Shown here: in pieces, positions 3,821-54,807 of the stretch
Layout: each line of letters starts with the position of its first letter
Position numbering within the stretch: the stretch's first letter is position 1
DNA from: Monocercomonoides exilis PA203
Lineage: Eukaryota > Protista > Preaxostyla
Length of the DNA: 64,000 nucleotides
NCBI GenBank assembly: GCA_001643675.2
Contig: LSRY02000008.1
Coordinates: 1,674,001-1,738,000 of the forward strand
Direction: 5' to 3'
The notes under the pieces: model-generated
Told to the model about the DNA's origin: nothing
The model's input: only the letters and a program-made list of their open reading frames with translations
The model's database searches: none
Position numbers and translations under genes: made by a program

Positions 3821-6283
3821 TTACTCACCTTGCTTCCTTTCCTTTTCACAAATAAACCCGATTTTCTGCTCCTTGATAAAACAGGAGATTTCGAGTTTTG
3901 CAGCAGTTATGATGCTTATTTTATGTGGGTTGCACGAGTTGCAGCAAAACAGAAACAAAATCGCAACGCACCTATGATTTTTTATTCCTCCCTCCAAATT
4001 CGCATGTGACCAAAAATTCATCTCAGAATCGCCCTTCCCAAACATACAACCACTCTGCCCCCCTTCTGTTCTCGTGCTCATCATCCCAAATGTCTCTCCA
4101 GCCTTCACACTCTTTGCCACAACCACCCCATCTCCTTCAGTCAACTTCACATTCGTCACCTTCACATTCGCCAGCACGCTCTCTCCTGATGCTGTGGCTG
4201 TCAGATACAGTGCAGATGACGGCAATGAAGAAGAAGAAGAAGGAGAAGGAGAAGATGGATCCGGCTCAGAGAACAATGGCTTTGAGACATTCATATTTAT
4301 GATCTCCACACCAACCATCGACAGCTGCGACAGCGGCACCACAAACACTGACGAAGACATCACATAGTTTCCTGAAGAAATACTTGTGGTGATCACAACA
4401 TCCTCCAATGAGAGTGACCCACCTCCATCAGACACCACAACCACACTCGGCGAAGGATTTATATTTGAGTTACAATCAACCTTCATGTGCAATAAACCAA
4501 GGTGACCTGTCGTCACACTGAACAGCGTTCCTACAGATGAAAGTGCTCCTGTTCCAATCGAACTCTCCGTCCTCCCTTTCCCAATGACTGAAATCTTCTT
4601 TTCTCCAATCTCAACTGTTGTTGCCTCGCTTGTGTGATTCCCTTCCATCAGCGTGATTGTCAAACTAATCTGCACCTCACACATCTCAAACGCCTTCTTC
4701 ACCGTCAGACACGGATTTGTTTCATTTGCCCCACAAAGCGGAGATGTATCATTTCCATTCACCGAGACATAGATCGTCTTGTCCTTCAGCCAATCCTTCT
4801 TTTCTGTGTGCTGAAAATACCAGGTGTTTGCATTCGAGTAGTTGTATGCATAACACATTCTCTGTTCATTCGTGTTTGTTGTGTAACATTCCTTGAACGG
4901 ATTTCCTGTGCTCAAAAAAACATTGTAATAATCAACATATTCAACGTCATGCCCACGTGGATTGGCTGCATCCCTGCAGCTGCATTCATGGAAGAACAAA
5001 AAATAACAATAAATCACATCATTTTGTGATGCTTGTCTGTATGGATATAACTCCAATCCTCCTCCCTCTTGCCGTGCTGTACATGAAATAAATTGAATGC
5101 TCCTCATTTTGAATTGCGTGATTGGAATGTTCGCACAACACATGCCTCCACCTCCATTGTTTGTCAATGAGCATGAAGTGAAACTGCAGTCAAACACACA
5201 CGCACTCTCCCCTCCTCCATTTTCTGTTCCAATGCAATCAGTTCCTGAAACATTAAAATAATCAAGATAAAGTCCTCCTCCACATTCTCTTCCATTGCAA
5301 TTCTGGTATTCACATCCGCTGATCCGAACACACAATTTTATAGTATGAATGAACATCCCGCCACCACGATAACTTTGTGCAGTACAAGAATCAAAGGTGT
5401 TGTTCACAATCTCAACAGATTTGATATTGTAACAATAAATACCGCCTCCTGCATAATAAGCATAACAGTTGTTGAAAGAGCAATGAGAAACAGACACAGA
5501 GGCAGATGATTGACTGTACATGCAGATGGCCCCTCCGCTAGATATTCCATCAGCATACGAGTCAGCTTCTCCTGTTGTCTTCGATCCATTCCATTCGCAC
5601 CAAGTGAATGTATTAGCTCCATTGAATGTTTCATTTTGTCTTCCTGGAGCCAGCTTATTAGTTTTAGTTCCTTCGCAAACAACATTTCTTGTCCTGCAAC
5701 ACCCAACAAATGAGGTGTTTGAGGCAGTCAGAGAGGCATAGGGGTTGTTGAGGGAAGGAACAATTCCTCCATCATATGCATCATTAACAGATGAGAATGA
5801 ACAACTGCTCATCAAACATGAGGCTTGGGTTGACGTAGTTGTTGAAGGTGAACATGCATCATTTGCTGTCGAGATGTTGAAAAAAGTGAGTTTGGAGAGG
5901 GATATTAGGGGTATTGAAGGGGACGAAAGGAATGGGGCTGACGAGACACAAAAAGAAGAGAAATGTGATTCACTCACCGAAATACTCCCTTCAATGCCTT
6001 CTCCATCTCCATCTCCTTCTCTTCCTCTTCCTCTTTCTCCTCCTTCTCCTTCACTCGCTTTTTCTTCACCTCCACCCTTCTCCCCTCCATATCCCTTCCC
6101 TCCAAACAGCCTGCCTGAATAGATCTCTCCCCCTCTTCTCCACCCTTTCAATGTGATGTTCCTCAACACCCCAATGCTCCCACTCACATCAAATGCCCCT
6201 GCCTCAACATCCTTCCCCATCCCCACAGCACACCCCCTCACCACAACCACACTCCCCTTCCTTCCACACTCCCCCAACCACAA
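3821..6283 (-). CDS. Cys/Gly-rich right-handed beta-helix (pectin-lyase-like) putative surface protein, copy 1; probably 3'-truncated, true start uncertain
   Basis: 820-aa ORF with repeated (S/D/G)CxFxxC...GGG(I/L/M) coils. Departs from copy 4 abruptly after AKSVKAGETF. Confidence 0.8.
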   Translation of the reverse strand: MWLGECGRKGSVVVVRGCAVGMGKDVEAGAFDVSGSIGVLRNITLKGWRRGGEIYSGRLFGGKGYGGEKGGGEEKASEGEGGERGRGREGDGDGEGIEGSISVSESHFSSFCVSSAPFLSSPSIPLISLSKLTFFNISTANDACSPSTTTSTQASCLMSSCSFSSVNDAYDGGIVPSLNNPYASLTASNTSFVGCCRTRNVVCEGTKTNKLAPGRQNETFNGANTFTWCEWNGSKTTGEADSYADGISSGGAICMYSQSSASVSVSHCSFNNCYAYYAGGGIYCYNIKSVEIVNNTFDSCTAQSYRGGGMFIHTIKLCVRISGCEYQNCNGRECGGGLYLDYFNVSGTDCIGTENGGGESACVFDCSFTSCSLTNNGGGGMCCANIPITQFKMRSIQFISCTARQEGGGLELYPYRQASQNDVIYCYFLFFHECSCRDAANPRGHDVEYVDYYNVFLSTGNPFKECYTTNTNEQRMCYAYNYSNANTWYFQHTEKKDWLKDKTIYVSVNGNDTSPLCGANETNPCLTVKKAFEMCEVQISLTITLMEGNHTSEATTVEIGEKKISVIGKGRTESSIGTGALSSVGTLFSVTTGHLGLLHMKVDCNSNINPSPSVVVVSDGGGSLSLEDVVITTSISSGNYVMSSSVFVVPLSQLSMVGVEIINMNVSKPLFSEPDPSSPSPSSSSSLPSSALYLTATASGESVLANVKVTNVKLTEGDGVVVAKSVKAGETFGMMSTRTEGGQSGCMFGKGDSEMNFWSHANLEGGIKNHRCVAILFLFCCNSCNPHKISIITAAKLEISCFIKEQKIGFICEKERKQGE

Positions 6284-12429: not shown

Positions 12430-13977
12430 TTAAAATTCAAGAGAAAATATTCCACTTCTATAAGACACAACAACCACACTCGGTGAAGAAGGATTTGCAT
12501 TTGAGTTACAATCAATCTTCAGCTTTCTCATTCCCAGATGACCTGTTGATACATTGAACAGCGCTCCAGTTGATGAAAGTGCTCCTGTTTCGATCGAACC
12601 TGCTTCCCTTCCCTTCCCAATGACTGAAATCTTCTTTGATCCAATCTCAATTGTTGTTGCCTCACTTTGATGATTTCCATCCAGCAGCGTGATTGCCAAG
12701 TTTATCTGCACCTCACTCATTTCAAATGCCTTCTTCACTGTCAGACAAGGAAATGTTTCATTTGCCCCACACAACTCAAAATTATCATTTCCATTCACCG
12801 AAACATATATCGTCTTGTCCTTCAGCCAATCCTTTTTTGATGTTTGATCATATGTCCAGGTACCTGAAGGATAATATGCTAAACACACCCTCTTATCATC
12901 TGTGTTTGTGGTGTAACATTCATAAAATGGATTTCCTGATTCCAAATACAGATTGTATGTATCTGCAAATTCGGCATCATGTCCTCGTGGATTATTTGCA
13001 TCCCTGCAGCTGCATTCGTGAAAAAACAAGAAGAAGCAATATAGTTTATTGTCAGGTGCTGTTGCTCGATTTGGCTGCAAAAATAATCCTCCTCCCTCTT
13101 GCCGTGCTGAACATGAAATAAACTGAATGCTCCTCATTTTGAATTGTGTCGCAGGAACAGTAGCACAACACATGCCTCCACCATATATATTTGTAACTGA
13201 GCATGAAGTGAAGCTGCAGTCAAACACACACGCACTCTCCCCTTCTCCATTTTCTGTTCCAATGCATCCTGTTTCTGAAACCTGAAAATTTTCTAATTTC
13301 AACCCTCCTCCATATCCAATTGCTTGACAGTTTTTGAACTCACATCCACTCACCCGAGCACAAAATGAAGCAGATAGGATATAAACACCTCCCCCATATC
13401 GATTTGTGGAGACACAACAATTCAAAGTGCTGCTTTCAATAGTCACTGCTCTGATGGTATTGCACATTATCCCTCCACCACACCAATATGAAGAACACTC
13501 GTTGAATGCGCAGTGAGAAATGGAAAGTGTTCCAGATGTTAAGGTGTGCATGAATATTGCTCCTCCATTCGAGGCTTGATTTGAATAATCTTCACTCTTC
13601 TCAGTAGCCTTCGATCCACTCCATTCGCACCAAATAAATGAATTTACTCCATTATCCGTTGCGTTTTGTCTCCCTGGAGTCAACTTATCGTTTTTTTCTC
13701 CAATGCATTCAATATTTCTTGTCCGACAACACCCAACGAATGAGGTGTTTGAAGCTGTCAGAGATGCAAAGGGGTTGTTCAGAGAAGGAACAATCCCGCC
13801 ATCATATGCATTGCAGACTGATGAAAAGGAGCAACTGCTCATAAAACATGAGGCTTGGGTTGACGTAGTTGTTGAAGGTGAATAATCTGAAGATGCTGTT
13901 GAAAAGTTGAAAAATGATAATTTGGAGAGAGAAGCAAATGGCATCGAGGGAGTTGAGAGGAATGGGGCTTGACTCAC
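12430..13977 (-). CDS. Beta-helix family copy 2; 5' frame disrupted, 3'-truncated (cassette or pseudogene)
   Basis: 515-aa ORF. Upstream ORF 13978..14190 ends in TGA and the family ISVSES motif is out of frame. Ends at a decayed SDGGGSLSLE (SYRSGIFSLEF*). Confidence 0.75.
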   Translation of the reverse strand: MSQAPFLSTPSMPFASLSKLSFFNFSTASSDYSPSTTTSTQASCFMSSCSFSSVCNAYDGGIVPSLNNPFASLTASNTSFVGCCRTRNIECIGEKNDKLTPGRQNATDNGVNSFIWCEWSGSKATEKSEDYSNQASNGGAIFMHTLTSGTLSISHCAFNECSSYWCGGGIMCNTIRAVTIESSTLNCCVSTNRYGGGVYILSASFCARVSGCEFKNCQAIGYGGGLKLENFQVSETGCIGTENGEGESACVFDCSFTSCSVTNIYGGGMCCATVPATQFKMRSIQFISCSARQEGGGLFLQPNRATAPDNKLYCFFLFFHECSCRDANNPRGHDAEFADTYNLYLESGNPFYECYTTNTDDKRVCLAYYPSGTWTYDQTSKKDWLKDKTIYVSVNGNDNFELCGANETFPCLTVKKAFEMSEVQINLAITLLDGNHQSEATTIEIGSKKISVIGKGREAGSIETGALSSTGALFNVSTGHLGMRKLKIDCNSNANPSSPSVVVVSYRSGIFSLEF

Positions 13978-14196
13978 TCACAGAAATATTCCATTCAATA
14001 ACTCCTTCTCTTCCTTTCCCCTCTTAGAAAAATATCGCAAAATAACCCAATATGGCTGTGCCCATTTTTCTATCTCTTCTGCCTCTTCTGAAATGAATCT
14101 TTTTCCCACATCTCTGTTTTTCCTTTTGTTTCCATCTTTCGCTCCTAACCTTATTCCATTCACATTCTTCGTTTGTGAATATTCACGCAAAAGTCC

Positions 14197-14321
14197 CTGT
14201 TATCAATTAAAAAACATATTTAATAATACAAAAAAATCAAAAAACATAATATATAAAAAATAAAAAAAATAAGAAATAAAAATCAAAATAACTTCAATAA
14301 TAAATATGAAAACCCCTGCAC
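14197..14321 (-). other. Probable spliceosomal intron upstream of copy 2
   Basis: Minus strand reads AAAATG|GTGCAG...T-rich...TTGATAACAG|GGACTTTTGCGTGAATATTC. Equivalent segments at 37711..37835, 46347..46414 and 49455..49561. Confidence 0.5.
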
Positions 14322-17300: not shown

Positions 17301-20198
17301 TTAAAAGTGAAAACATTCAAGCATTCTTCATTGCGCATTGGCATTCTAGCAGCCTTGTACTTGAAAAAGGAATGTTTTCCAAATTCAAATAATTTATTAA
17401 TGGTTGCATTTATCCATCATTTTCGCAAAATATAATTAACATGCACGAAAAGAGGGACCGCCAAATAAAATTTACCGCCAATTTGGATGCATTATTATGT
17501 GAGAGGATATATGAAACATGAAAAGTAATGCTGCTGGCCTTGGAACTGCGATTAATTCGATTGTTTTTTAATATTCGGAAAGCATTGGGCTGTGCAGCCA
17601 CAAAAGGCTCGAAACTGCGATACAACGTATATTCTTATTTCTATTTTGGTTTTATTCAGTCAGAGGATATTTTATGTTTTTCTAGCCTTTTCGGAGCCAA
17701 AGCATCGAATGAAATGAATAAGATGGCGATTACGTCTTTGAAAACCTGAGCAACGAAGAAGACTCGAGAGGGATAATTGCATGCTCATAGAGGGCTAATG
17801 ATGAAGAAGTTTTATGACCAGCTCAATTTGAGCAAAAACAAGAGAGAAGGGCAAAAATAGTAAGAGAAGAAACACGACAAAGTCAAAAGGAAGAATAAGA
17901 GTAATTTTTTTAGCCAGAATCGAAAAGCAAATTAAGGAACAGGGGCGAGGATCCTTTGCATAAAAAAAAGAGAGAGATTTTTTGGAAATGAGGGGTGGAT
18001 TATTTGTATGCAGAGATATTTGCGATTTTCAGGAAAGATCGAGCTGATGTGAGCGAAGATATTGTTCGAAGCTGAACATCAAAGGTCTGTTGATTCAAAA
18101 TTTAAGTTATTTTCTTTTTTTCCTCATCGACATTTGTTCATTTTTGCTGTTCTTCAAGGCGATTTCTCCTTCAATTTTGTTCTCATTGTTGAATTCACTT
18201 ATATTTTCAGAGAATAATGATGAAACAAAGACTTATTTTAATTTTCTTAAGGGGAGGCACAAGCCGCACATGCGCATGCAACGATGTCCAAAAGGCCAAA
18301 CAATGCAAATAGCCAACGGGAGCGAAGAGGGATTGCGGTGCATGTGTTTATGCAGCAAGACCAAAGGAAGCGATATGGATCAGAACTCCACGAAGAGAAG
18401 GAAGTTTTTGCCATTGCCCTTTCCTTTCCTTCTTTTTTCTCCTTCTTCTACCATTTCAGTAATTTCGAGTAATTTTGCGGATGATGCACGCAACAAGGTT
18501 GATACGTTCCTGCTGTTGAAGTACTTTGACTGGGATTGTTGACTGCATTTCAGAGCAAAAAGTCCAAGGAGCAGTTTCATATAAATGTCGGGTTCGATGA
18601 AGATAGTTTTCTTCGCGCTTTCGAAAATATGTTTTTTATTGATATTTTCCTTCTGACGCAGGAACGCCTGCTTGCAGCTATGCGATTTTTTCCACCAAAA
18701 CAGCCAGCAATAATGAGGAGCCATTGAAGCGAATGTAATGATTTTGCCTTTTGTGTCTTTTATGCGATTCAATGAAATAATGTCCTATTTCTGGTGCAAC
18801 ATGGAAACTGCCTTTGACGTCTAACAATGGAACTGAAGCATTTTCAGAGCTGGCAGAATTACTGAGGATTGAGCAAAGGCAAAAGAAAATACAGGCGAAG
18901 ACTCAAAGTTAGTTTTCGGGGAAATCGAAATGACGGTGGCATGTTTGCTTACGAAAAGTGCTTCTGTCTGCGAAGTTTGATGAGTGCGTAAGACAAAGAT
19001 TAGCGATGGAAAGATTACCATGATGAATAAAAATGAAAAAATAGAGGAAGAGGAGCAAATGAAATTGCTTGTAGAATAAAATTTCGGCTGGGAAATGGAG
19101 TCAAAGGCATATTTTGACTCTGAGAAGACGCATATATTATTCATAGAGGCAAAACCTTCAAAATTGCATATAATTCTAGATTCGTGCTTGACAATTCCTT
19201 CGTCAAGTTCTTCATTTGCCATGAAATCCAGTAATTATAAAATCGATATGAACTGTTACATGCATTTTCTGAATTAGGAATTTGCTACGAAAAAAGAAAG
19301 AGAGCAAGAAAATCATTAAAATTTCAGCAACATCTTTCATTGGGCGATTTGTTACAAAACAGCAAAATTTGCATGCGTGCCACAGAAGCAAAGTGTGCAA
19401 AAGAAATGGAAACTCAAAATCTTTCGGATAAAGACGAAACGATGAAAACCGAAGGCAAATAATCGATGTAAACAGATGGCGCTCATCAAAGTTCCTGCTT
19501 TATTTGTTTTGAATTACGAGATTGAGAAGGATAAATACATCCGTGTATCTTTCATCAGGATCAGATGAGAATTTGAATTTCGTCACAGAAATCTAGTGTT
19601 ATTCAGATTTAGCGTTGCTTTCATGTTGGATTTGCCAGGAAAACAAAAGATATGAAGAAGGAAATAAATTAGAAAAAAATGTTGACACGGTCCAAACTGG
19701 AAAGATAAGAATTTCATACGACACCAACAAAAGAAACAGGGAAATAGTGGAAGAAGAAGAAAAAACCAACGCAAATGAATTAACACAGCAATTTTTATGA
19801 AAGGCTCATTAGATGGACTTTTTTGATGCATTCAAAAATATGAAAAAGAGAAATGCTTTCTAACTGGGATTTGAGCGCATGAGGAATTGTTTGCAAAGTT
19901 CGCGCTTAGCTGATAGAGCTTGTAAAGGCAAAGACTTTGCACACAAACTAATCTTCCAAAAAGTTGAATTTTTTGGTAAATGAGATAATTGACAATGACT
20001 CGACCAGAAAAGAAGAGAAAGAAAAAGAAGAAAATAACGATAATGTGGAACGTGAAGTTGGAATCAACGGAGATAACTAGCATTGCGTAATTTAAAGGCT
20101 TATCTTTTGTTTCTCTTTTTCATCTGACATTTTTCAATATTTCAACATCAAATGAGGCATGTTCGCCTTCAACAATTACGTCAACCCAAACCTCGTGT

Positions 20199-21498
20199 TT
20201 GATGAGCAGTTGCTCATTCACTTCTGTTTGTGATGCATATGATGGAGGAATTGTTCATTCCCTCAACAACCCCTATGCCTCTTTGACTGCCTCAAACACC
20301 TCATTTATCGGTTGTTGTCGGACAAGAAACGTGAAATGTGAAGGAAATGCAGATAATAAGAAACAGCCAGGGAGGCAAAACGAAACAGAAAATGGAGAAA
20401 ATTCATTTATTTGGTGCGAGTGGAATGGATCGAAGGCTACTGAAATGAGCGAAGATTATACAAAACAAGCCTCGAATGGAGGAGCAATATTTATGTATGG
20501 CTTAACGTCTGGTTCACTTACAGTTTCTCACTGCGCATTCAACGAGTGTTCTTCATATTGGTGTGGTGGAGGGATAATGTGCAATACCATCAGAGCAGTG
20601 ACTATTGAAAGCAGCACTTTCAATTGTTGTGTCTCCACAAATCGATATGGAGGAGGTGTTTATATCCTATCTGCTTCATTTTGTGCTCGGGTGAGTGGAT
20701 GCGAGTTCAAAAACTGTCAAGCGATTGATTATGGAGGAGGGTTGAAATTAGAAAATTTTCAGGTTTCAGAAACAGGATGCATTGGAACAGAAAATGGAGA
20801 AGGGGAGAGTGCGTGTGTGTTTGACTGCATTTTCACTTCATGCTCGGTTACTGGATCAAATGGAGGAGGCATGTATTGTGTCACTGTTCCTAATCAATTC
20901 AAAATGAGGAGCGTTCAGTTTATTTCGTGCTCAGCATCTACACATGGAGGAGGAATGAGATTATATCCTAATGCTCCAACAACACCTGATGATGGAATCT
21001 ATTGTTATTTCCTTTTTTACCACGAGTGCAAATGTTCTAACAACCCATCTTACGGCCATGATGTTCATTTTAGCGATCGCTATAATCTGTATTTTGATTC
21101 GGGAAATCCGTTCTATGAATGTTACACAACAAACGCAGATGATCAGAGGGTATGTTATGGATATAATTATACGGATTCTAAGGGTTGGACATATGGTCAA
21201 ACATCAAAAAAAAAATTGGCTGAAGGATAAGGCAATTTATGTGTCAGCGAATGGAAATGATACATCTCCACTTTGTGGGTCAAATGAATCAAATCCATGT
21301 CTGACAGTGAAGAAAGCGCTTGAGATGTGCGAGGTGCAGATAAGCTTGACAGTCACGCTGATGGAAGGGGATCACACAAGCGAGGCAACAACGATTGCGA
21401 TTGGAACAAAGAAGATTTCGGTCATTGGGAGAGGCAAAGATAAGAGTTCGATTGGAATAGGGACGCTTTCTTTTTCTTCTTTTCCATCTTTGCTATAA
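20199..21498 (+). CDS. Beta-helix family copy 3, truncated at both ends; frameshift in A-run 21206-21215 is probably a sequence error
   Basis: ORFs 20199..21230 and 20971..21498 together equal the intact mirror ORF 30408..31706 (A10 here versus T9 there). Confidence 0.75.
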
Positions 21499-37649: not shown

Positions 37650-37695
37650 AGCGGAAGTTGGAGCGGAAGTTGGAGCGGAAGTTGGAGCGGAAGTT
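37650..37695 (+). repeat. 12-bp tandem repeat (GCGGAAGTTGGA)n
   Basis: About 4 units versus about 2 at the mirror site near 14337..14358. Confidence 0.9.
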
Positions 37696-37710
37696 TGTGA
37701 AAATAAAATG

Positions 37711-37835
37711 GTGCAGGGGTTTTCATATTTATTATTGAAGTCTTTTTGATTTTTATTTCTTATTTTTTTTATTTTTTATATATTATGTTTTTTGATTTTT
37801 TTGGATTATTAAATATGTTTTTTAATTGATAACAG
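37711..37835 (+). other. Probable intron upstream of copy 7
   Basis: AAAATG|GTGCAG...TTGATAACAG|GGAC. Confidence 0.5.
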
Positions 37836-37992
37836 GGACTTTTGCGTGAATATTCACAAACGAAGAATGTGAATGGAATATAGAAAGAAGGAAGAAAATT
37901 GAAACAAAAGGTGAAAAAGAGATGTGGGGAAGCCATGATGATCAGAAGGGGAAGAAGAAGCAGAAAAAATGATACAATCATATTGAGATATT

Positions 37993-39621
37993 TTGCTTCA
38001 TTGCTACAAGAAGCAAGGGGAAGAAAGGGAAATGTTGAAGGAAGCGTTTCAGTTTGCGAATCACACTTTTCTTCTTTTTTTCAATTTTATCTCATCACAT
38101 TCCATATCTCTTGTTTCACTCTCCAAATTAACATCTTTTAACATCACAACAGCATCTACAGATTGTCCATCTCTAGCAACTATGTCAACCCTAACCACAT
38201 GTTTTATGAATAGCTGCTCATTCTCATCACTCTGCGATGCGTATGATGGAGGGATTGTCTCTTCCCTCAACAATCCCTTGGTCTCCTTGTCTGTTTCAAA
38301 CACTTCATTCACTGAGTGTTGTCGTACAAGAAACGTTGTATGTGAAGGAAATGCAGATGTCAAGTTGACTCCAGAGAGGCAAAATACAACAGACAATGGA
38401 GCAAATTCATTTATTTGGTGTGAATGGAACGGATCGAAGGCTAATGGAAGCAAAGATGATTATGCTGATGATGCTTCAAATGGTGGAGCAATTCGCATGT
38501 ACAATCTCAATTCTGGAGAACTTTTTGTTTCGCATTGTCTGTTTAATAATTGTTTAGCATACAGCCGTGGAGGTGGAATTATGTGTCATACAATCAAATC
38601 TGTGTATATCGAAAATAATGTGTTCAATGCTTGCACAGCACAAAACCATTACGGAGGAGGAATGTATGCTTATTCGATATTGGAATGTGTTCGGATTAGT
38701 GGGTGCGAATTTAAGAATTGCAAAGCATACAGCGAAGGTGGTGGTTTACGATTGTACAGTTTTAATGTTTCAGGAACAGGATGCATTCCAACAGAAAATG
38801 AAGGAGGAGAGAGTGCGTGTGTGTTTGATTGCAGTTTCACTTCATGCTCACTTTCTGGATCAAATGGTGGAGGCATGTGGATTTATAATTTTCCTGCTCA
38901 AGTCAAAATGAGGAGCGTTCAGTTTATCTCCTGTACAGCTTCGTCACAAGGTGGGGGAATGAGATTGGAGCCAAATCGAGCAACAGGGCCAGTTGATGGG
39001 TGCTATTGTTATTTCCTATTTTTTCATGAGTGCAAGTGCTCATCCAATCCTCCCAGTGGTCATGATATATTTTATGTTGATAAATACGATGTTTTCTTGA
39101 ATGAGGGGAATCCGTTTTGTGAAAGCTATTCCACCAACAGCGATGATAGAAGAGTGTGCTATGTGTATAACTACTCGAATGCAGGTGCCTGGACATATGA
39201 TCAAACATCAAAAAAGGATTGGCTGAAGGATAAGACGATCTATGTTTCTGTGAATGGAAATGATACATCTCCACTTTGCGGGGCAAATGAATCAAATCCG
39301 TGTCTAACAGTGAAGAAAGCGTTTGAGATGTGTGAGGTGCAGATTAGCTTGACAATCACACTGATGAAAGGGAATCACACAAGTGAGACAGCAACGATTG
39401 ATATTGGGGCAAAGAAGATTTCAGTCATTGGGAAAGGGAGGACGGAGAGTTCGATTGGAACAGGGGAACTTTCATCATCATCAGCAGTAGGAACGTTGTT
39501 CAGTGTGACGACAGGTCATCTGGGAATGAGTCATTTGAAAGTTGATTGTAACTCAAATGCAAATCCTTCTTCACCGAGTGTTATTGTTGTATTTTATGAA
39601 AGTGAAAATATTTGCACTTGA
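37993..39621 (+). CDS. Beta-helix family copy 7; 5' frameshifted, 3'-truncated
   Basis: 542-aa ORF. The SVSVCESHFSS motif lies in another frame (37899..38141). Ends PSVIVVFYESENICT*, the same position as copy 2. Confidence 0.75.
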   Translation: MLHCYKKQGEEREMLKEAFQFANHTFLLFFNFISSHSISLVSLSKLTSFNITTASTDCPSLATMSTLTTCFMNSCSFSSLCDAYDGGIVSSLNNPLVSLSVSNTSFTECCRTRNVVCEGNADVKLTPERQNTTDNGANSFIWCEWNGSKANGSKDDYADDASNGGAIRMYNLNSGELFVSHCLFNNCLAYSRGGGIMCHTIKSVYIENNVFNACTAQNHYGGGMYAYSILECVRISGCEFKNCKAYSEGGGLRLYSFNVSGTGCIPTENEGGESACVFDCSFTSCSLSGSNGGGMWIYNFPAQVKMRSVQFISCTASSQGGGMRLEPNRATGPVDGCYCYFLFFHECKCSSNPPSGHDIFYVDKYDVFLNEGNPFCESYSTNSDDRRVCYVYNYSNAGAWTYDQTSKKDWLKDKTIYVSVNGNDTSPLCGANESNPCLTVKKAFEMCEVQISLTITLMKGNHTSETATIDIGAKKISVIGKGRTESSIGTGELSSSSAVGTLFSVTTGHLGMSHLKVDCNSNANPSSPSVIVVFYESENICT

Positions 39622-44518: not shown

Positions 44519-46129
44519 TCAAATATCTGCTCGGAAAAAATAACAGGAGAAGGGATGTTGAAAATAAGATTTTTGTAGATTAATAGTTGACATGAAATGA
44601 GCTGAAGCTGTTGAATCACTTTTTCTCGAGGATAGTTGATAAATAGGGAGAAGAAAGAATGAGCAGAAAAAGATAAAGAAGAGAATGATGAAATATAAAA
44701 AATTTGTTTCTGTTCCAATCGAACGTGTTTCTCTTCTTTTCCCAATGACTGAAATCTTCTTTTCTCCAATCTCAATTGTTGTCACCTCGCTTGTGTGATC
44801 CCCTCCCATCAGCGTGACTGACAGGCTCACCTGGATCACGCTCTTTTCAACTGCAACACCAATGGTTCGGCATGCACTTGACTCATCCAGTCCACACAAC
44901 TCTTCTTCACCGCCACCACTCACAGCCACAAATCGGTTGAGAATCCCTCTCTTCAGCCAATCCCACTTTTCTGTGTGCTGATATGTCCAACCCTTGGAAT
45001 CCGTATAATCATGTCCATAGCACACCCTCTGGTCATCTGTGTTTGTGGTGTAACATTCATAGAACGGATTATTCGAAGATAAGAAAACATTATATCGATC
45101 ATAATATACCATATCATGACCATATGGCGTATCTGCAGAGCATTTGCATTCATGAAAGAACAAAAAATAACAATAAATCACGTCATTTTGTGATGCTTGT
45201 CTGTATGGATACAGCTCCAATCCACCTCCATGTGCCGATGCTGAACATGAAATAAACTGAATGCTCCTCATTTTGAATTGCGTGATTGGAATATTTGCAC
45301 AATACATGCCTCCACCGTAGTAATTTGTCACCGAGCATGAAGTGAAACTGCAGTCAAACACACATGCACTCTCCCCTCCTTCATTCTCATCTCCAATGCA
45401 TCTTGTTCCTGAAACATTAAAATTATCAAGATCAATACCTCCTCCATTATAATTTGCTTTACAACTTTGAAATTCACATCCGCTGATTCGTACACATGTT
45501 GAAATCCCATTCACATATAATCCTCCTCCGTAATGGTTTTGTGCTGTGCAAGCATTGAACATGTTATTTTCGATACGCACAGTCTTGATTGTGTTGCACA
45601 TAATTCCACCTCCACGGCTGTATGCAAAGCAATTATTAAACAGACAATGTGAAACAGAGAGCTCTCCAGAATTGAGATTGTACATGCAGATAGCCCCGCC
45701 ACTCGATATTCCATCTGAAACAGAATCGCTTTCTCCTGTTGTCTTCGATCCACTCCACTCACACCACGTGAATGTATTCGGTCCATTGGCTGTTATGTTC
45801 TGTCTTTCTGGTTGTTTCTTATTAGTTTCAGTTCCATTGCATTCAACATTTCTTGTTCTGCAACACCCAACAAACGAGGTGTTTGAGGCTGTCAAAGAGG
45901 CATAGGGGTTGTTGAGGGAAGGAACAATCCCGCCATCATATGTGTCGCTAACTGATGAAAATGAACAACTATTCATTAGATATGAGGTTTGGGATGATGT
46001 AGTCGTTGAAGGTGAGCATGCTTCATTTGCTGTTGAAATATTGAAAAATGTGAGTTTGGAGAGTGAAACAAGAGGGATTGAAGGTGATGAGAGGAATGGG
46101 GTTGAAGATTGGACAAGAAATTCTCTCAC
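44519..46129 (-). CDS. Beta-helix family copy 8; 3'-truncated after SIGT
   Basis: 536-aa ORF with the KRGILNRFVAVSGG module. Tail after RSIGTET is low-complexity, non-family sequence. Confidence 0.75.
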   Translation of the reverse strand: MREFLVQSSTPFLSSPSIPLVSLSKLTFFNISTANEACSPSTTTSSQTSYLMNSCSFSSVSDTYDGGIVPSLNNPYASLTASNTSFVGCCRTRNVECNGTETNKKQPERQNITANGPNTFTWCEWSGSKTTGESDSVSDGISSGGAICMYNLNSGELSVSHCLFNNCFAYSRGGGIMCNTIKTVRIENNMFNACTAQNHYGGGLYVNGISTCVRISGCEFQSCKANYNGGGIDLDNFNVSGTRCIGDENEGGESACVFDCSFTSCSVTNYYGGGMYCANIPITQFKMRSIQFISCSASAHGGGLELYPYRQASQNDVIYCYFLFFHECKCSADTPYGHDMVYYDRYNVFLSSNNPFYECYTTNTDDQRVCYGHDYTDSKGWTYQHTEKWDWLKRGILNRFVAVSGGGEEELCGLDESSACRTIGVAVEKSVIQVSLSVTLMGGDHTSEVTTIEIGEKKISVIGKRRETRSIGTETNFLYFIILFFIFFCSFFLLPIYQLSSRKSDSTASAHFMSTINLQKSYFQHPFSCYFFRADI

Positions 46130-49100
46130 AGAAATTTCTTTCCTTCAACGTTTCCTTCTCTTCCCCTTCATTCAGAAAAATTTTGCAAAATATCCCAATA
46201 AGTTTCAGTATCTTTTTTTGTCTTCGCTCGCCTCTTCTGATAGGAATGTTTTCGCCTAAATCTTTTTTTTCCTTCTGTTTTCGTCTCCTGCCTTCTTTCT
46301 GTATTCCATTCACATTCATCCCTTTTGAATATTCATGCAAAAGTCCCTATTATCAATTAAAAAAAAAAGAAAAAAAATATTTAAAATGTAATACAAAATA
46401 TCACAAACCAGTACTATTTTCCTTTCGCAATCTGCTTCCTTTTCTTCATCTTCATATCCTTCTTGACTTCCTGTCACATTTCTTCTTCAGCCATTTCCTC
46501 AATTTTCCGATTATTCTTTTCTGTTGCTTCCCCTCCTTCTTTTTCAAATCGCTGCACAAATCTTCAAAGCCCTCCTCTTCCATTCATTTCATTGATTTCC
46601 TCCAGCTCATTCTTCGATATTCTCAAAAAAATTGTCATTGCCTGCTTTCTGAAAAGCATCAAATATGCTCTTTTCCCCATGTTCATTCGTTGCCTGAAAA
46701 TGTCCTTCCATAAATCTTAATCCCTCAAAAAAAAAAAATAAAATGTTTGAAAAATTGGAGGAAAAAAATAATACAAAACACACTCTAAAAATATATTTAT
46801 TGCCAATCTTCACACACTTTCTTCTTCTTCTTCGAATGCCTCTCAAAATATTGTTCTTTTCTGCCAACAAAACTCGCCTTTTTTGCTTCCCTTGTATGTT
46901 TCATTGCCAATGAAAGTGATTCTGTTCTGCTTCCAAAAACTTGCTTCATTTCCAATTCTCGGCACTGATTCCGCTCGAATAACACACAAATAATAAAAAT
47001 GCTTCAATATAATTTTAATGAAGATGAAGAAGATAATGACAGCGGTGATGGCGATGATAGAGATGAAGATGATAAAGTTGGTGAATGCGATGTTATTGTC
47101 AAGTTTGAATACTATGTGTCTTCTGTCAGAAGATATTCTCAGCATCGCAACCTCGTTCTCTGCTCTTGTGGATAACCCTTCGATAACACAATGCAAAAGG
47201 CGACAGCAAAATGATTCAAAGTCCATTTTTCCTGTAATTTGCCTCCAGCTGCCTGTATTACGCCAAACTGTCTGTTTTTCTCGTTTTTTCGCCTCTCAAG
47301 CCAAGCAATGAATTCCAGTTCCATCGCTCCCCCCAGTGCGTAAAATCAATGTCTTGTCCTTCTTCTCCAAAGAAAGGCTCCTTGTTCTGTCCAAACTGAT
47401 TTCAATCTCCTGTTTCAGTTATTTGCCCCAATCTTTCCAACAAACTTAAAAATGAAAATGTCCTCTTCCTCTTTTTAAAAAAACGCTCCCTTTTCATAGA
47501 GATTGGTTGTTCTTCCTTTTTGCCTTGGACATCTTTCGACCCCGTTGATTTCTGCTCCATTAAATTTCATTTTTCATCGCATTTCTATCCATCGCGCATG
47601 TTGAGTCCAAAATAAGTCACATAAACATTTATGATAAAATACATTCAGGCTCTAGTAATATATTTGTAACATAATGTTTGTCTCGCTTCCTCGCTGTTCT
47701 CCTCTGCATGGAATAAATCGTCCATTTTATATAATTTGTCTGAATCACGACTTTGGAGAGGATACGGATGGAAATATCTTCACAACAAATAGAACAATAA
47801 AAATTACATACATCAAAAATTCTTCATTTCCATCGAAAATATTGTTGTTACACAGCCATCCAGCAATCAATATGAACAATTTCATCTTCCATTAAACAGA
47901 TATCGCTTTTGTAATACTCAACCTTTTCACTGGAAATATATCATTTAGTCAATCTGTCTTTGTTTTAGCTTCGGAATCTGACCCCGTTGACAGTTTCTGA
48001 GCATTAAGCATTTCTTGATCATTTTCCATAACGAATAAGAGTCTCAAAAGAAAAGGAGCACAACTCGATGTGTCGTGGCTGAATGGGCATATGAAGACAA
48101 TGCGATAACAAAAGGATGGATTTGTGGTATGGGGTGAAGGAGTTGAGTTCTTGGAGGAAACAGGGTTTTGAGAGGGAAAGGAGCGACAAAAGGATGTTTT
48201 TTGTGGAAAAGAGGTGTTTTTGCGAGATTTCAGATGCAAAACGGATGTGCGGGAGATGGATTTGGATGGGATTTTGAGGGGTTGTTTTTTCGATTTTTAT
48301 CATTGGGAAGGTGTTGAGGCAGTGTTTATTATTTGAGAAAAGGAATTTGTTGTTGAGGAGGTGGGATAAGAGGGAAAACAAGAAAGGTGGAGTGAATGGA
48401 ATATATTTATTGGAGAGGAGGATAAGAGATGGAGAGATATGGAAAAGGGATATTTTTTTTTTTCAAATGCAGGGAGAGAGAGGAGGGAGGCATATGAGGC
48501 GGAACAAAGAGAAGAGATTTTGTGGGCTTATGTTTGATAAGAAGGAAAAGTGGGATTGAAGAAAAAAAAGTGAAGAAAAATATTCTTCAAATTTTTATAT
48601 TATTTATTTTGTGAACCGTTTGGCCGCGCCTCTCATTTGCAGGGCAAGTGTTGGAGGCAGAGGTGGAGAAAGACAGGAAGAAGGAACATCAGCGCTGGCA
48701 CTTTGCATTGGAGGTGTGGAGACAGAGGAAGATGAAGGGCTGACAATGAGAGAGTATTTTGCAATGGAAAGAGACAGAAAAAGGATGGAGGTATTTTTTT
48801 TTTTTTTTTTTTTTTTGGTTGGAAGAAGGGCATGGGAGATGAGGAGACAGGGATTGTGATATTTGGCGTGGTGGTATTATTGTTGTTTTGGGGGGAAATG
48901 GAGAGAAGAAGAAGAAGATTTGGGCAAGGGATGGGAAGAGATTCTTTGGATAGAATCTTCTTCTTTGCCAGTTTTTTTAAAAGAATGGAATTTGTGGAGG
49001 TAATTTGAGAGGAAGCAGAACAGAAGATTGAGCTTTTGTTAATATTTTAAAAAGAAGAAGAAAGAAAAAGCCAGCGAAAGGCGGTCATTGTGAAAGATAT

Positions 49101-49716: not shown

Positions 49717-52244
49717 GTGAAATTTCACCAAGAGGCAAGGGGGAGAGGAAGAGAAGGAGGCAAAAAAAGAAGCGTTTCAGTGAGTGAGTCAAACTCCATT
49801 CCTCTCAACTCCCTCGATGCCATTTGCTTCTCTCTTCCAACTGATTTTTTTTCAATATTTCAACAGCAAATGAAGCATGCTCGCCTTCAACCACCTCCTC
49901 ATGCCAAGCTACATGTTTTATAAGTAGTTGCTCATTTTCGTCAGTCTGTGACGTTTATGATGGAGGTATTGTTCCTTCACTCAACAACCCCTTAGTCTTT
50001 TTGACAGCCTCAAACACCTCGTTTGTTGGGTGTTGCAGAACAAGGAATGTTGAATGTGAAGGAACTGCAGACAGAAAGTTGATTCCAGACAGACAGAACA
50101 CAACAGCCAATGGAGCAAACTCATTCACTTGGTGTGAATGGAATGGATCGAAGACAACAGGAGAAAGCGATTCTGTTTCAGATGGAATATCGAGTGGCGG
50201 GGCAATCTGCATGTTCAGTCAATCAAATGCCTCTGTGTCTGTTTCTCATTGCACTTTCAGCAGCTGCTATGCTCATTATGCAGGGGGCGGTATAAATTGC
50301 TACAATATCAAATCGATTGAGATTGAAAACAACACATTTGATTCTTGTACTGCACAGAATTATCGTGGGGGTGGAATATTCATTTATTTGATTTTGAAAT
50401 GTGTTCGGATCAGCGGGTGCGAATTCCAGAATTGTAAAGCATATAGCCATGGAGGAGGACTTTATTTGGATAATTTTCAGGTTTCAGAGGCAAACTGTAT
50501 TGGAGCTGAAAATGGAGAAGGGGAGAGTGCGTGTGTGTTTGACTGCAGTTTCACTTCATGCTCATTGACAAACAATTATGGAGGAGGTATGTTTTGCTAT
50601 AATGTTCCTGGCACACAATTCAAAATGAGGAGCATTCAGTTTATTTCATGTTCTGCGTTGGCAAGGGGAGGAGGATTTTATTTTGATCCAAACAAGCTAC
50701 ACCAAAAATAATTCAAAGTCGAAAAACTTTCAATCAAAATCGAAAAACTTTCAACCAAAGTCGAAAAACTTTCAAACGAAATCGAAAATTATTATTCAAA
50801 GTTGGAAAACTTTCATTCAAAGTCGAAAGTTTTCATTCGAAGTCGAAAAAGTTTCATTCAAAGTCGAAAATTATTATTCAAAGTCGAAAAAGTTGCAAAC
50901 GAAATCGAAAAACTTTCAATCGAAATCGAAAGACTTTCAAACAAAGTCGAAAATTTCACAAAAAAAATAAATGTAAAATAAAAAGTATTCCACAAAAGAT
51001 GAAAATATTCTTTTGTTTTTGGATATATTATCAGCAATGTTTGCGTTGTCGATTTCTGCAAATTTTAAAGATTGCGAACCAAAATTAATTCAAAAATCAA
51101 CTCAAAACACATCTCAGAACATTTGTTTCCTTCAATAAGAAATGAGTCGTTTGTGATGAAAAAACTTTAAATAAGAGAGTCAATAATGTGTTCTTTATTC
51201 TTCATTAAATAGGAAAAAAAAATAACAATTTTCTGAAGTAAATTTTCTGTGAAGAAGAGTGCTTTCAACTGAAATGAGATAAAAATATGTCAGAATTTCT
51301 CTCATAATTTTAAATTTGTAATTGGTCTTAAGAAAGCTAAGAAAAACACCGGAAAAAAGATAAAAAAACATTTTTATTACAAATGTGATTGATATTTCAA
51401 CAAAAACAATGTTTTTTGACTTGTATTAATTTTTGTCATCTTTTTGAAAATTTAAAGTTTTTCGAACTTTCGACTTTGTTTGAAAGTTTTTCGACTTTGT
51501 TTGAAAGTTTTTCGATTTCGATTGAAAGTTTTTCGATTTCGTTTGCAACTTTTTCGACTTTGAATTATAATTTTCGACTTTGAATGAAACTTTTTCGACT
51601 TCGAATGAAAACTTTCGACTTTGAATGAAAGTTTTCCGACTTTGAATAATAATTTTCGATTTCGTTTGAAAGTTTTTCGACTTTGGTTGAAAGTTTTTCG
51701 ATTTTGAATAATTTTTGGTGTAACAGCACAAAATGAAACAATTTATTGCTATTTCCTCTTCTTCCATGAATGCAACTGTTTGGCCAATATTCCATATGGT
51801 AATGATATGATGTATGTTGATTATTACAATGTTTTTTTGAGCACAGGAAATCCGTTCTATGAATGCTACACCACAAACACAGATGAGAAGAGAATGTGCT
51901 ATGCGTATAATTACTCGAATGCAGGTGCCTGGACATTTGATCAATCAATGAAAAAGGATTGGCTGAAGGACAAGACAATTTATGTTTCGGTGAATGGAAA
52001 TGACTTGAATGAGCTGTGTGGGGCAAATGAATTAAATCCGTGTCTGACGGTGAAGAAAGCGTTTGAGATGTGTGAGGTGCAGATTAGCTTGGCAATCACG
52101 CTGCTGGATGGGAATCACAAAAGCGAGGTGACAACAATTGAGGCTGGATCAAAGAAGATTTCAGTCATTGGGAAGGGAAGGGAAGCAAGTTCGATTGGAA
52201 CAAGAGCTGTTTTGCTTTTATTCTCTGCTCAGCAGTTTTTTTAA
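49717..52244 (+). pseudogene. Beta-helix family copy 9, interrupted by a transposon and 5' frameshifted
   Basis: Fragments 49717..49923, 50001..50711 and 51780..52244. Removing the element plus one TA restores FDPNKLTAQNETIYCYFLFFHEC. Confidence 0.85.
50700..51720. mobile_element. 1021-bp foldback-type non-autonomous DNA transposon with ~250-bp modular TIRs and TA target duplication
   Basis: TA|CACCAAAAAT...ATTTTTGGTG|TA. TIRs are built from ~21-bp units (A(A/G)TCGAAAAACTTTCAAxCxAA); AT-rich non-coding interior. Confidence 0.9.
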
Positions 52245-53097: not shown

Positions 53098-54807
53098 ATG
53101 AAGAAGGGGCAGAAAAGATGGAAAAAGGGATGCGACCATGTTGAGGTATTTTGTGAAATTTCACCAAGAAGCATTGAGAAGAGAAGGAGGCAAAGAAAGA
53201 AGTGCTTCAGTGAGCGAACTGCATTTCTCTTTTTTCTGTATTTTTCTCTTCCAACATATTTTTTTTTCAATATTTCAACAGCAAATGAAGCATGCTCACC
53301 TTCAACGACTACATCATCCCAAACCTCATATCTAATGAATAGTTGTTCATTTTCATCAGTTAGCGACACATATGATGGCGGGATTGTTCCTTCCCTCAAT
53401 AACCCCTATGCCTCTTTGACTGCCTCAAATACCTCATTCATAGAATGTTGCCGGACAAGAAATGTTGAATGCATTGGAACTTCAGGTAATAAGAAACAAC
53501 CAGGAAGACAGAATATAACAGACAATGGACCGAATACATTCACGTGGTGTGAGTGGAGTGGATCGAAGACGACTGGAAACAAAGATGATTATACTGATGA
53601 TGCTTCAAATGGTGGAGCAATTCGCATGTACAATCTGGGAAATGGAGAACTTTCTGTATCTCATTGCACGTTCAACGACTGTTATGCCTATTATAGAGGC
53701 GGTGGGATTATGTGCCTAACAATTAAGTCTATACAAATCGAAAATAATGTGTTTAATGCTTGTACTGCACAAAATCAGCATGGAGGAGGAATGTATGCGT
53801 ATGGAATTTCATCATGTGCCCGAATTAGCGGATGTGAATTCCAGAATTGTAAAGCAAATTATTACGGAGGAGGACTTCTTTTTGAATCTTTTCAGGTTTC
53901 AGGAACAGGATGCATTCCAACAGAAAATGGGGAAGGGGAGAGTGCGTGTGTATTTGACTGCAATTTCACTTCATGCTCACTTACGAATAGTTGCGGCGGA
54001 GGTATGTTTTGTAGAAGTGCACCTGAACAATTCAAAATGAGGAGCATTCAGTTCATTTCATGTTCAGCACGGCAAGAGGGAGGAGGATTATTTTTGCAGC
54101 CAAATCGAGCAACAGCACCAAATGATAAAATTTATTGTTTCTTCTTGTTTTTTCACGAATGCAGCTGCAGGGATGCAAATAATCCACGAGGACATGACGT
54201 TGAATATGTTGATTATTACAATCTGTATTTGGAATCAGGAAATCCATTTTATGAATGTTACACCACAAACACAAACGATAAGAGGATCTGCTTTGCATAC
54301 AATTATGCAAATGCAAGTGCCTGGACATATGATCAAACATCAAAAAAGGATTGGCTGAAGGATAAGACGATTTATGTTTCTGTGAGTGGGAATGATGAAT
54401 ATGAGTTGTGCGGGGCAAATGAATCAAATCCGTGTCTGACAGTGAAGAAGGCGTTTGAGATGTGTGAGATGCAGATTAGTTTGACAATAACGCTGATGAA
54501 AGGGAATCACACAAGCGAGGTGACAACAATTGAGGTTGGATCAAAGAAGATTTCAGTCATTGGGAAGGGAAGGGAAGCAAGTTCGATTGGAACAGGAACA
54601 CTTTCAGCAGCAGAAGCGCTGTTCAGTGTGACGAGTGGCCATTTGGGAACGAGCCATTTGAAGGTTGATTGCAACTCAACAGCAGATTTTTCTTCACCAA
54701 GCGTGGTAGTGGCATCTGATGGAGCAGGCAGAACACTTTCCCTGAAAGAATGTTTCAGGAAGAGAGTTATTTGTATGCAGAAAACGATAGCCGAAGGATG
54801 CAAATAG
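53098..54807 (+). CDS. Beta-helix family copy 10; 5' disrupted, 3'-truncated
   Basis: 569-aa ORF. The SASVSELHFS motif is in another frame (53138..53335). Family similarity ends at SDGAGRTLSLKE. Confidence 0.75.
   Translation: MKKGQKRWKKGCDHVEVFCEISPRSIEKRRRQRKKCFSERTAFLFFLYFSLPTYFFFNISTANEACSPSTTTSSQTSYLMNSCSFSSVSDTYDGGIVPSLNNPYASLTASNTSFIECCRTRNVECIGTSGNKKQPGRQNITDNGPNTFTWCEWSGSKTTGNKDDYTDDASNGGAIRMYNLGNGELSVSHCTFNDCYAYYRGGGIMCLTIKSIQIENNVFNACTAQNQHGGGMYAYGISSCARISGCEFQNCKANYYGGGLLFESFQVSGTGCIPTENGEGESACVFDCNFTSCSLTNSCGGGMFCRSAPEQFKMRSIQFISCSARQEGGGLFLQPNRATAPNDKIYCFFLFFHECSCRDANNPRGHDVEYVDYYNLYLESGNPFYECYTTNTNDKRICFAYNYANASAWTYDQTSKKDWLKDKTIYVSVSGNDEYELCGANESNPCLTVKKAFEMCEMQISLTITLMKGNHTSEVTTIEVGSKKISVIGKGREASSIGTGTLSAAEALFSVTSGHLGTSHLKVDCNSTADFSSPSVVVASDGAGRTLSLKECFRKRVICMQKTIAEGCK

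Follow-up and report, generated by a model that had tools for sequence, protein, structure and literature searches.

The window, the whole 64,000-nucleotide stretch of DNA analysed here, lies on contig C80 of Monocercomonoides exilis, a commensal, mitochondrion-less gut protist (oxymonad). It contains 12 copies of a right-handed beta-helix "head" of about 500 aa, the N-terminal part of the receptor-like proteins of about 3000 aa of this organism. All ten copies counted in an earlier note on this DNA are present, and the total rises to 12 with two decayed copies that lie beyond the end given there. Copy 1 (c1; 3821..6283, minus strand) is an open frame of 820 aa in one arm of palindrome P1, with its twin just left of the window. 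Copy 2 (c2; 12430..13977, minus; open, 515 aa) sits in an older outer arm of palindrome P2, and its positional twin, at 81% identity, is copy 7 (c7; 37993..39621, plus; open, 542 aa). Between them, copy 3 (c3; 20100..21480, plus) is the twin of copy 6 (c6; 30408..31805, minus), and copy 4 (c4; 21754..24213, minus; 819 aa) that of copy 5 (c5; 27693..30152, plus; 819 aa). Since these two pairs are the arms of a single palindrome, P2, and 99.25% identical, the window holds about eight independent copies. An apparent frameshift in c3 at 21206 is an assembly error. Copy 8 (c8; 44519..46135, minus; open, 536 aa) lies in an outer arm of palindrome P3, and its twin is found right of the window, at about +65.3-66.6 kb. 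Copy 9 (c9; 49812..52226, plus) is split by a foldback element of about 1 kb (50699-51722), and the same insertion is carried by its decayed twin, copy 12 (59720..61952, minus). Copy 10 (c10; 53098..54807, plus; open, 569 aa) has a decayed, frameshifted twin in copy 11 (57408..58899, minus).

The three palindromes are built of inverted arms whose differences are substitution-only patches, with identity graded from 81% to 100%. P1 (1..4279) is centred at about 2140; aligned over 2013 nt, its inner arms show 14 substitutions and zero indels. P2 (15397..36519) has a spacer of 71 nt (25919-25989) between its arms, and its older outer arms (12394-15429 and 36550-39663) are 81% identical. P3 (47463..64000) is centred at about 56083, with arm identity rising from 90% outside to 97.6% inside and many small indels in one arm; a 37-nt motif occurs twice in the window, once per arm of P3. 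A search of the window against Rfam gave no match. The surrounding 264 kb contain 55 head-only copies arranged as nested palindromes, with 23-26 twin pairs that count as near-identical according to the threshold, most of them inverted. All 55 span only about residues 46/140 to 620-924 of relatives of about 2900 aa. The frame is open in 36 of the 55 for 95% or more of the homologous stretch (none of 2000 simulated copies stayed open after 12% random substitutions), and dN/dS among copies is about 0.29 at a dS of 0.5-1.1. Judged by coordinates, similar palindromic arrays of heads occur on contigs C53, C71 and C42. RNA-library contigs, uninformative on transcript ends or levels, cover c3 and c4 (20044-24310), and none map to the adjoining 24400-25995, which DNA runs do cover.

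Homologues of the heads are all MONOS_* proteins of M. exilis, save one Blattamonas protein carrying PF05048, the sole match in another named organism. The full-length relatives are open frames of about 3000 aa with a match to the Pfam family Beta_helix (PF13229). At their C-termini, PF07714 scored above its gathering cut-off in two of three (25.3 and 39.6 bits; the third had no match), covering only model positions 159-257, that is, the kinase C-lobe. The window copies lack this kinase-like region. Pfam found nothing on the heads at E <= 0.1 for c1 or c5 and a chance-level match only for c10; membership in the Chlamydial Pmp repeat family (PF02415) was rejected on the same grounds, having no Pfam support on c1 or c5 and a chance-level match on c10. 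In the AlphaFold2 model, the core (residues 50-340, pLDDT 84-95) is a right-handed beta-helix. VIA-align placed this core at Z 15-18 over about 230-260 aligned residues (rmsd 3-5 A); the best matches, at Z of about 18, were tailspikes and pectate-lyase-fold proteins, and the best 50 entries were all beta-helix proteins. Foldseek against the PDB gave no significant match for the head model. As modelled, the head shares the fold of right-handed parallel beta-helix proteins (PF13229 or NosD-type; tailspikes, pectate lyases, bacterial adhesins and autotransporter passengers), but its sequence identity to known ones is only 7-16% and, unlike them, it has a Cys-rich ladder per rung and a Gly-Gly-Gly corner. 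The Cys/Gly scaffold is strongly conserved among copies, and no catalytic role can be inferred for the head.

The copies are block mosaics whose nearest neighbours switch along the protein, as the earlier note had claimed from shared strings, all 11 of which occur exactly in the copies named. Sliding windows along the alignment place c2 next to c6 at 96-99% (next best about 60%) and then next to c10 at 91-94%, c5 next to c7 at 98%, c8 next to c10 at 99% and c1 next to c8 at 93%. A tract of 306 nt in c2 (13215..13520, minus) is 98.0% identical to c6 (31076-31381), for an overall identity of 80% between the two copies; its runner-up match genome-wide is at 84% at the protein level. Another 93 nt of c2 (13055..13147, minus) are 98.9% identical to c10 (54027-54119) and sit inside a longer block of 91-95% identity between these copies. 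Between c5 (27884..28065, plus) and c7 (38193-38374) 182 nt are 98.9% identical, for 75% overall, and between c8 (45891..46048, minus) and c10 (53263-53420) 158 nt are 99.4% identical, with other versions of the second half of this tract in both palindromic twins. Tracts of at least 95% identity, with several partners, make up 21%-62% of each window copy; those common to non-twin copies amount to 53% of the length of c7 and 62% of that of c10.

Formal tests agree with this picture. The PHI statistic was 0.394, whereas 2000 permutations gave 0.551 +/- 0.0037 and never a value that low (z = -42), and in a GENECONV-like test the longest runs shared by c2-c6, c2-c10, c5-c7, c8-c10 and c5-c8 lay far above all 2000 permutations. 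Maximum-likelihood trees of four segments contained conflicting clades with 98-100% bootstrap. That one tree might fit all windows, the outcome that the earlier note had set against its own reading, is ruled out by AU tests, in which no segment accepted a tree built from another segment (p between 7e-4 and 1e-80); the tree of the whole alignment was tolerated by segment s1 alone (p = 0.18). The four segments were picked after inspection of the data; PHI is independent of that choice.

Across the array, a scan of the multiple alignment found 42 tracts of 100-1000 nt and 96-100% identity among 33 non-twin copies, in pairs that are 71-85% identical overall (88-91% in three borderline pairs); megablast with a percent-identity filter is unsuitable here, since it discards tracts that lie within long HSPs of lower identity. 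With a looser cut of 80 nt, 61 tracts were observed and 5.5 expected under independent columns; the background identity in the tract columns is only 0.72. Tract length runs from about 80 to 1000 nt, with a median of about 150 nt, and many tracts show no nucleotide difference at all. Partners lie at a median separation of 46 kb versus 78 kb for random pairs (p = 6e-5). Genome-wide, three of four tested tracts had their best matches within about 130 kb on C80, with weaker ones on other contigs, and the fourth, from c7, had nearly equal matches on contigs C71 and C53; exchange between arrays on different contigs was judged from identity tables alone. Partners are inverted in 30 cases and direct in 12, which is uninformative because nearly every copy has an inverted twin. 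The earlier note had further placed the switches in five conserved anchors (WCEWxGSK, ESACVFDC, QFKMRS, FFHEC and GNPFYECYTTN), and here it does not hold: 11 of 76 tract ends fall within +/-10 nt of an anchor, with 15.4% expected (p = 0.64). The columns at tract ends are in general slightly more conserved (0.743 vs 0.72, p ~0.005), a result towards which the detection of ends is itself biased, and 13 of the 76 ends cluster where the helix core meets the downstream module.

The twins record individual events. Palindromic or triplicated twin copies are 99-100% identical save for discrete internal patches, several of which match a third copy at 97-100% (k09 matches k17/k18, k47 matches k43/k46, k20 matches k14 and c8 matches c10). 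Such third-copy patches are the footprint of conversion rather than crossover. In c1, 476 nt (4657..5132, minus) carry 130 differences from the twin, and elsewhere the two are identical across 4.4 kb, which we read as a further, probable conversion footprint. The best match to this patch is 86% in the 264-kb region and 91% genome-wide, so it is impossible to polarise the event in c1 and its twin; an old difference, with the arms around it homogenised, would give the same picture. In k47, 292-342 nt are 100% identical to the 3' end of k43/k46; this tract reaches the cassette end, and the event involves the adjacent copy. Where tract ends coincide with cassette ends, as in k47/k46, a duplication junction, a crossover and a conversion are indistinguishable.

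The reading that we hold to be highly probable is that the head-only fragments form a nested-palindrome array of at least 264 kb, whose mosaics arose from many short-tract ectopic gene conversions. It extends the segmental gene conversion proposed in the earlier note, which is supported by PHI, by the rejection of a single tree, by the synonymous sites and by the non-reciprocal patches in twins. We consider it improbable that most mosaics are instead chimeric junctions, left by palindrome-building duplications or by unequal crossing-over with arm ends inside cassettes. The k47 event, which runs to the cassette end and involves an adjacent copy, would fit such an origin, as would the 13 tract ends at the boundary of helix core and downstream module, but many tracts are internal with divergent sequence on either side, twins retain identical flanks on both sides of their patches, and the distance between partners can exceed 100 kb, with several unrelated copies in the interval.

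Very unlikely is an artefact of assembly or polishing, in which a chimeric repeat consensus would mimic mosaics and fold-back reads would create false palindromes. The assembly is a Nanopore one, with homopolymer errors (as in c3 at 21206) and small indels in one arm of P3; however, tracts of 150-340 nt at 100% identity within sequence that is 25-40% divergent are beyond what short-read polishing can produce, and the arms differ by in-frame, substitution-only patches at graded identities (81%, 90-97%, 99-100%). Furthermore, of the words sampled from the tested stretch, half recur in a DNA run of 2016, whose contigs match at 99% identity or more. The DNA run with the best coverage is probably the source of the assembly, and short-read contigs in this gene family measure 100-660 nt, too short for bridging mosaic junctions or palindrome centres. 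Least credible of all, to the point of being practically negligible, is a recombination-free origin by convergent or parallel selection on the protein. The strong conservation of the Cys/Gly scaffold could suggest it, but it is refuted at four-fold degenerate sites, of which 0-1 per 15-20 differ inside tracts (0/18, 0/18 and 1/15 for c5-c7) and 30-60% outside; the near-identity of these sites in shared blocks implies shared descent and not convergence at the protein level, and many tracts are identical in every nucleotide.

Under ectopic conversion, a break in one copy would be repaired by homologous recombination templated by another, which mostly lies tens of kb off on the same chromosome, and conversion between palindrome arms would additionally hold twins near-identical. 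Repair of this kind (SDSA-type) is inferred, and plausible, since M. exilis is reported to have the homologous-recombination pathway and to lack non-homologous end joining (PMC6759080). The shuffling of tracts might carry some selective value.

As to function, which is a separate question and one compatible with the conversion mechanism, the array could be a selected store of head variants, pieces of which are copied into expressed full-length receptor genes. We regard this as possible but doubtful. The 36 open copies of 55, set against none of 2000 simulated, and the dN/dS of about 0.29 are in its favour. So are 13 tracts (80-129 nt, at least 96% identity) common to cassettes and genes outside the array, with 0.1 expected, in a sample of 25 family genes, 23 of them with frames of about 3000 aa; most of these variants are found in 2-6 cassettes and in 0-1 other sampled full-length gene. 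Nevertheless, cassettes trade tracts with the dispersed full-length genes about 7 times less often per pair than with one another, and the tracts concerned are shorter. Given the unbalanced sampling, these tracts could have moved either way, and a flow from full-length genes to cassettes accounts equally well for the open frames and the low dN/dS. Moreover, the RNA-library contigs on c3 and c4 argue against silent cassettes, the family lacks a single expression site, and no case of switching has been seen. The wider claim, that the cassette arrays of C80, C53, C71 and C42 are a reservoir, maintained as a source of short tracts for about 100 or more full-length receptor genes, we consider more doubtful still.

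It is well known that clustered surface-gene paralogs undergo ectopic gene conversion, which shapes mosaic families such as Plasmodium var, the mosaic VSGs of Trypanosoma brucei, Babesia ves1 and Pneumocystis msg. The M. exilis family resembles these in being a large, lineage-specific extracellular family whose paralogs are patchworks of short tracts, in its clustered arrays with truncated copies and in a conserved scaffold bearing variable stretches. It differs from them in its beta-helix receptor-like proteins of about 3000 aa with a transmembrane region and a kinase-like tail, in its commensal oxymonad host and in its nested palindromes; we know of no mutually exclusive expression or switching of the M. 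exilis heads. Silent-cassette archives are another point of comparison (the vls cassettes and vlsE of Borrelia, Anaplasma msp2 pseudogenes, Neisseria pilS and the VSG pseudogene arrays of T. brucei). As in these, the truncated copies hold only the variable part, in frame and clustered, and exchange short segments, but in M. exilis there are about a hundred or more full-length genes in place of a single expression site, the cassettes appear to be transcribed, and exchange is mostly between cassettes. The palindromes of the primate Y and X, ampliconic and subject to arm-to-arm gene conversion, are likewise large inverted repeats with short spacers, multicopy genes and arms that are 99-100% identical and kept so by conversion. 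Unlike them, the M. exilis arms are only 2-11 kb long, are nested several deep, carry gene fragments and are also overwritten by third-party paralogs.

The mechanism is therefore not new, and what is undescribed is the M. exilis system. We found no description of the array in the literature on Monocercomonoides combined with gene conversion or kinase gene families, and the genome papers only mention tyrosine-kinase-like genes as the largest family, with unclassified repeats overlapping them (PMC6759080, PMC8767320). The system comprises hundreds of kb of nested palindromes whose truncated yet readable heads exchange tracts frequently, and the organism reportedly lacks end joining. As a natural data set it is clean, and can serve to study how long tracts are, how exchange depends on distance and how palindrome formation and conversion affect each other. 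Whether the cassettes are a store of receptor variants is a question that can be tested. If they were such a reservoir, recombination would diversify the ligand-binding tips across the whole receptor family, and the arrays would parallel the silent-cassette systems of pathogens, but with many recipients.

With the longest copy as query, tblastn recovered twelve stretches homologous to the receptor head in the window (G000:C80:1674001-1738000, in an assembly of 82.3 Mb and 101 contigs), so that the ten copies counted in the earlier note were an underestimate. These are c1 (4064-5986, minus strand), c2 (12436-14022, minus), c3 (20100-21480, plus), c4 (21757-24213, minus), c5 (27693-30149, plus), c6 (30426-31805, minus), c7 (38020-39591, plus), c8 (44711-46135, minus), c9 (49848-50696 plus 51726-52211, plus), c10 (53167-54786, plus) and the decayed c11 (57408-58899, minus) and c12 (59720-61919, minus), both of which carry many indels. 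Coding stretches have a G+C content of about 41% vs about 27% in the spacers between them, and an Rfam search of the window gave no match. Three palindromes, P1 (1-4279), P2 (15397-36519, arms 99.25% identical, with older outer arms at 12394-15429 and 36550-39663 that are 81% identical) and P3 (47463-64000), make c3/c6, c4/c5, c10/c11 and c9/c12 twin pairs on opposite arms and c2/c7 an old positional pair. The number of independent copies in the window is about eight.

The palindromes are real, since the inner arms of P1 differ by substitutions only (14 substitutions and no indels over 2013 nt) and the arms are of graded ages. In all three, arm identity climbs toward the centre: from 93.5% to 99.3% in P1 (1-4279), from 81% to 99.7% in P2 with its outer arms (12394-39663), and from 90% outside through 93% to 97.6% inside in P3 (44700-64000 and beyond). 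This looks like the outcome of nested re-duplication, or of conversion working best close to the hairpin centre. A one-base homopolymer difference from the twin c6 at position 21206 frameshifts c3, and is an assembly error, because no contig from a 2016 DNA run has the base. A foldback element roughly 1 kb long interrupts both c9 and c12 (50699-51722 in c9, its counterpart within 60145-61054 in c12). It looks like a Tc1/mariner-type MITE, with TA on each side and terminal inverted repeats (about 230 nt) built from tandem units of about 20 nt; being common to palindromic twins, the insertion is either older than P3 or was copied along with it. A 37-nt motif containing GTATGT occurs exactly twice in the window (47778-47814, minus; 63657-63693, plus), once per P3 arm. 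One occurrence lies upstream of c8 and the other upstream of its twin, each at a distance of about 1.6 kb and directed toward the copy; the motif may be a 5' splice site belonging to an exon farther upstream.

Across 264 kb around the window (C80:1574001-1838000) we found 55 copies. Each is a head-only fragment that corresponds to roughly residues 46/140 to 620-924 of the long proteins and to nothing beyond, and the annotation has these fragments as hypothetical proteins of 460-600 aa that start at an internal Met. Depending on the threshold, 23-26 near-identical twin pairs are present and most are inverted, which makes the array a series of nested palindromes; the same plus/minus pairing appears in genome-wide match coordinates on C80 at 1.17-1.94 Mb and also on three other contigs (C53, C71, C42). 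Elsewhere in the genome the head sequence is the start of open frames of about 2700-3100 aa, and a first-look search gives more than 2900 candidate head homologues in all. Homologues of the longest copy are all uncharacterized MONOS_ proteins of Monocercomonoides exilis, except for a metagenome protein (25% identical) and a Blattamonas beta-helix protein (30% identical). The head itself matches no Pfam family, and Foldseek alone returned no significant match for the AlphaFold2 model of the c7 product; the confident core of this model (residues 50-340, pLDDT 84-95) nevertheless superposes on right-handed parallel beta-helix proteins over about 250 residues with Z of 15-18, and the full-length relative L021 matches Beta_helix (PF13229). 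The module that follows the helix core exists in two alternative versions that share about 60% identity: c4/c5 (about 22750-22900 and 29000-29160) and c8 (about 44710-44900) have the first, the remaining copies the second. In a Pfam kinase search of three full-length C-termini (L021:1227-2576, minus; L023:7434-8783, plus; L022:1334-2683, minus), two matched PF07714 above the gathering cut-off, the match being to its C-lobe and preceded by a probable membrane span. The match is confined to this lobe (model positions 159-257) and the third C-terminus has no kinase match. A degenerate or split kinase is a possible reading of the tail. The full-length relatives are probably receptor-like members of the tyrosine-kinase-like expansion of M. 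exilis, where tyrosine-kinase-like genes have been named the largest family (PMC6759080; PMC8767320).

The window copies are mosaics. All the shared strings quoted in the earlier note are present in the copies it named, and the nearest neighbour switches along a copy, as it had claimed. In a MAFFT alignment the margins are wide: c2 is 96-99% identical to c6 where the next best copy reaches about 60%, and then 91-94% identical to c10. PHI, computed for the eight independent copies over 1356 ungapped columns with 516 informative sites, was 0.394 vs 0.551 +/- 0.0037 in 2000 permutations, and in a GENECONV-like run test the top pairs lay far outside every permutation. Maximum-likelihood trees of four segments contain incompatible clades, (c5,c7) at 100 with (c8,c10) at 98, (c2,c6) at 100, (c2,c10) at 100 and (c5,c8) at 100, and in AU tests every segment rejects the trees of the others (p from 7e-4 down to 1e-80), the sole tree tolerated being that of the whole alignment on segment s1 (p = 0.18). 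These segments were picked after inspection of the data, whereas PHI involves no such choice. Taken together, the conflicting trees, PHI and the run test mean that no single tree fits all parts of the alignment and that significant tracts are present.

The 264-kb region has 33 non-twin copies, which share 42 tracts that are 100 nt or longer and at least 96% identical (median 149 nt, longest about 1 kb, many 100% identical over 150-340 nt). Overall identity of the pairs involved is mostly 71-85%, with three borderline pairs at 88-91%; the columns in which the tracts lie have a background identity of 0.72. Under a null that preserves per-column conservation and per-pair identity, 5.5 tracts of at least 80 nt are expected and 61 were observed. 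From 21% to 62% of each window copy lies within tracts at least 95% identical, with several different partners per copy. Protein-level convergence is excluded, since four-fold degenerate sites are nearly identical inside tracts (differences at 0/18, 0/18 and 1/15 for c5-c7; 1/20, 2/19 and 1/15 for c2-c6), and 30-60% of them differ outside. As for the old pair c2/c7 (12000-15396 vs 36520-40000), its upstream non-coding flank of about 1.4 kb is far more alike than its coding part (0-11 vs 9-32 differences per 60 nt), the opposite of what purifying selection gives and what is expected if cassettes are overwritten by other paralogs.

The strongest evidence for conversion comes from twins. Apart from one 476-nt patch with 130 differences, c1 is identical to its twin across 4.4 kb. 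In the triplet k03/k06/k09 of the array only k09 deviates, over 83 nt in which it is 99% identical to k17/k18, and among k42/k47/k48 only k47 does, over 292 nt that are there 100% identical to k43/k46; likewise, the patch in which k20 deviates from k15 is k14 sequence, and that in which c8 deviates from its twin matches c10 at 97%. These are replacements of internal stretches with intact flanks on either side, the definition of gene conversion, and they support the segmental conversion proposed from the sequence. An assembly artefact is very unlikely as the source of the mosaics, because runs of 150-340 identical bases within sequence of 25-40% divergence are beyond what polishing can produce. 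The further claim that switches tend to fall at five conserved anchor motifs was not supported: 11 of 76 tract ends lie there vs 15.4% expected (p = 0.64), and the slightly higher column conservation at tract ends (0.743 vs 0.72 at random positions, p about 0.005) is expected from the way ends are detected. A hot spot, spotted post hoc, holds 13 of the 76 ends within 60 columns at the border of helix core and downstream module.

Tract partners are nearer to each other than random pairs are, at a median of 46 kb vs 78 kb (p = 6e-5). Genome-wide, three of four tracts searched found their best matches within about 130 kb on C80, with identity declining on other contigs; for the fourth, from c7, the best C80 match (89%) is followed closely by matches on C71 (87%) and C53 (82%), and a c5 tract has one 93% match on C71. 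Moreover, an alignment scan of 25 sampled genes outside the array (23 with open frames of about 3000 aa) against 33 cassette representatives found 13 shared tracts, 80-129 nt long and at least 96% identical, vs 0.1 expected; per pair this is about a seventh of the number between cassettes, and the tracts are shorter. For most of them the variant occurs in 2-6 cassettes and in 0-1 other sampled full-length gene, which, in an unbalanced sample, hints at flow from cassettes to full-length genes.

Most copies remain readable: in 36 of 55 the frame is open along 95% or more of the homologous region, simulated copies given 12% random substitutions all lose it (0 of 2000 open), and pairwise dN/dS is 0.23-0.34 at dS of 0.5-1.1. 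Contigs from 2024 RNA (metatranscriptome) libraries, labelled 'synthetic metagenome', cover c3/c4 with spacer and flanks (20044-24310) and suggest that head-only copies are transcribed, although contigs cannot show transcript ends or levels; the adjacent 1.6 kb around the P2 centre (24400-25995) has no RNA-library contigs, though DNA runs cover it. We consider it unlikely that selection maintains the array as a reservoir of variant receptors; it may instead be a by-product, readable thanks to conversion from functional genes.

The best-supported explanation for the mosaics is short-tract ectopic conversion together with arm-to-arm homogenisation. Homologous recombination among array members would repeatedly copy short tracts, and the arms of each palindrome would be homogenised alongside. 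M. exilis is reported to have a homologous-recombination pathway that is comparatively complete and to lack non-homologous end joining (PMC6759080), in which case a broken cassette would by default be repaired from a paralog. In the Monocercomonoides full-text literature on gene conversion and kinase gene families we did not find the heads, palindromic arrays or mosaicism described. Mosaic surface-gene families, archives of silent cassettes and palindromes homogenised by conversion are all well known, and the M. exilis array is a new instance of these phenomena, from an unusual organism and a family not described before.
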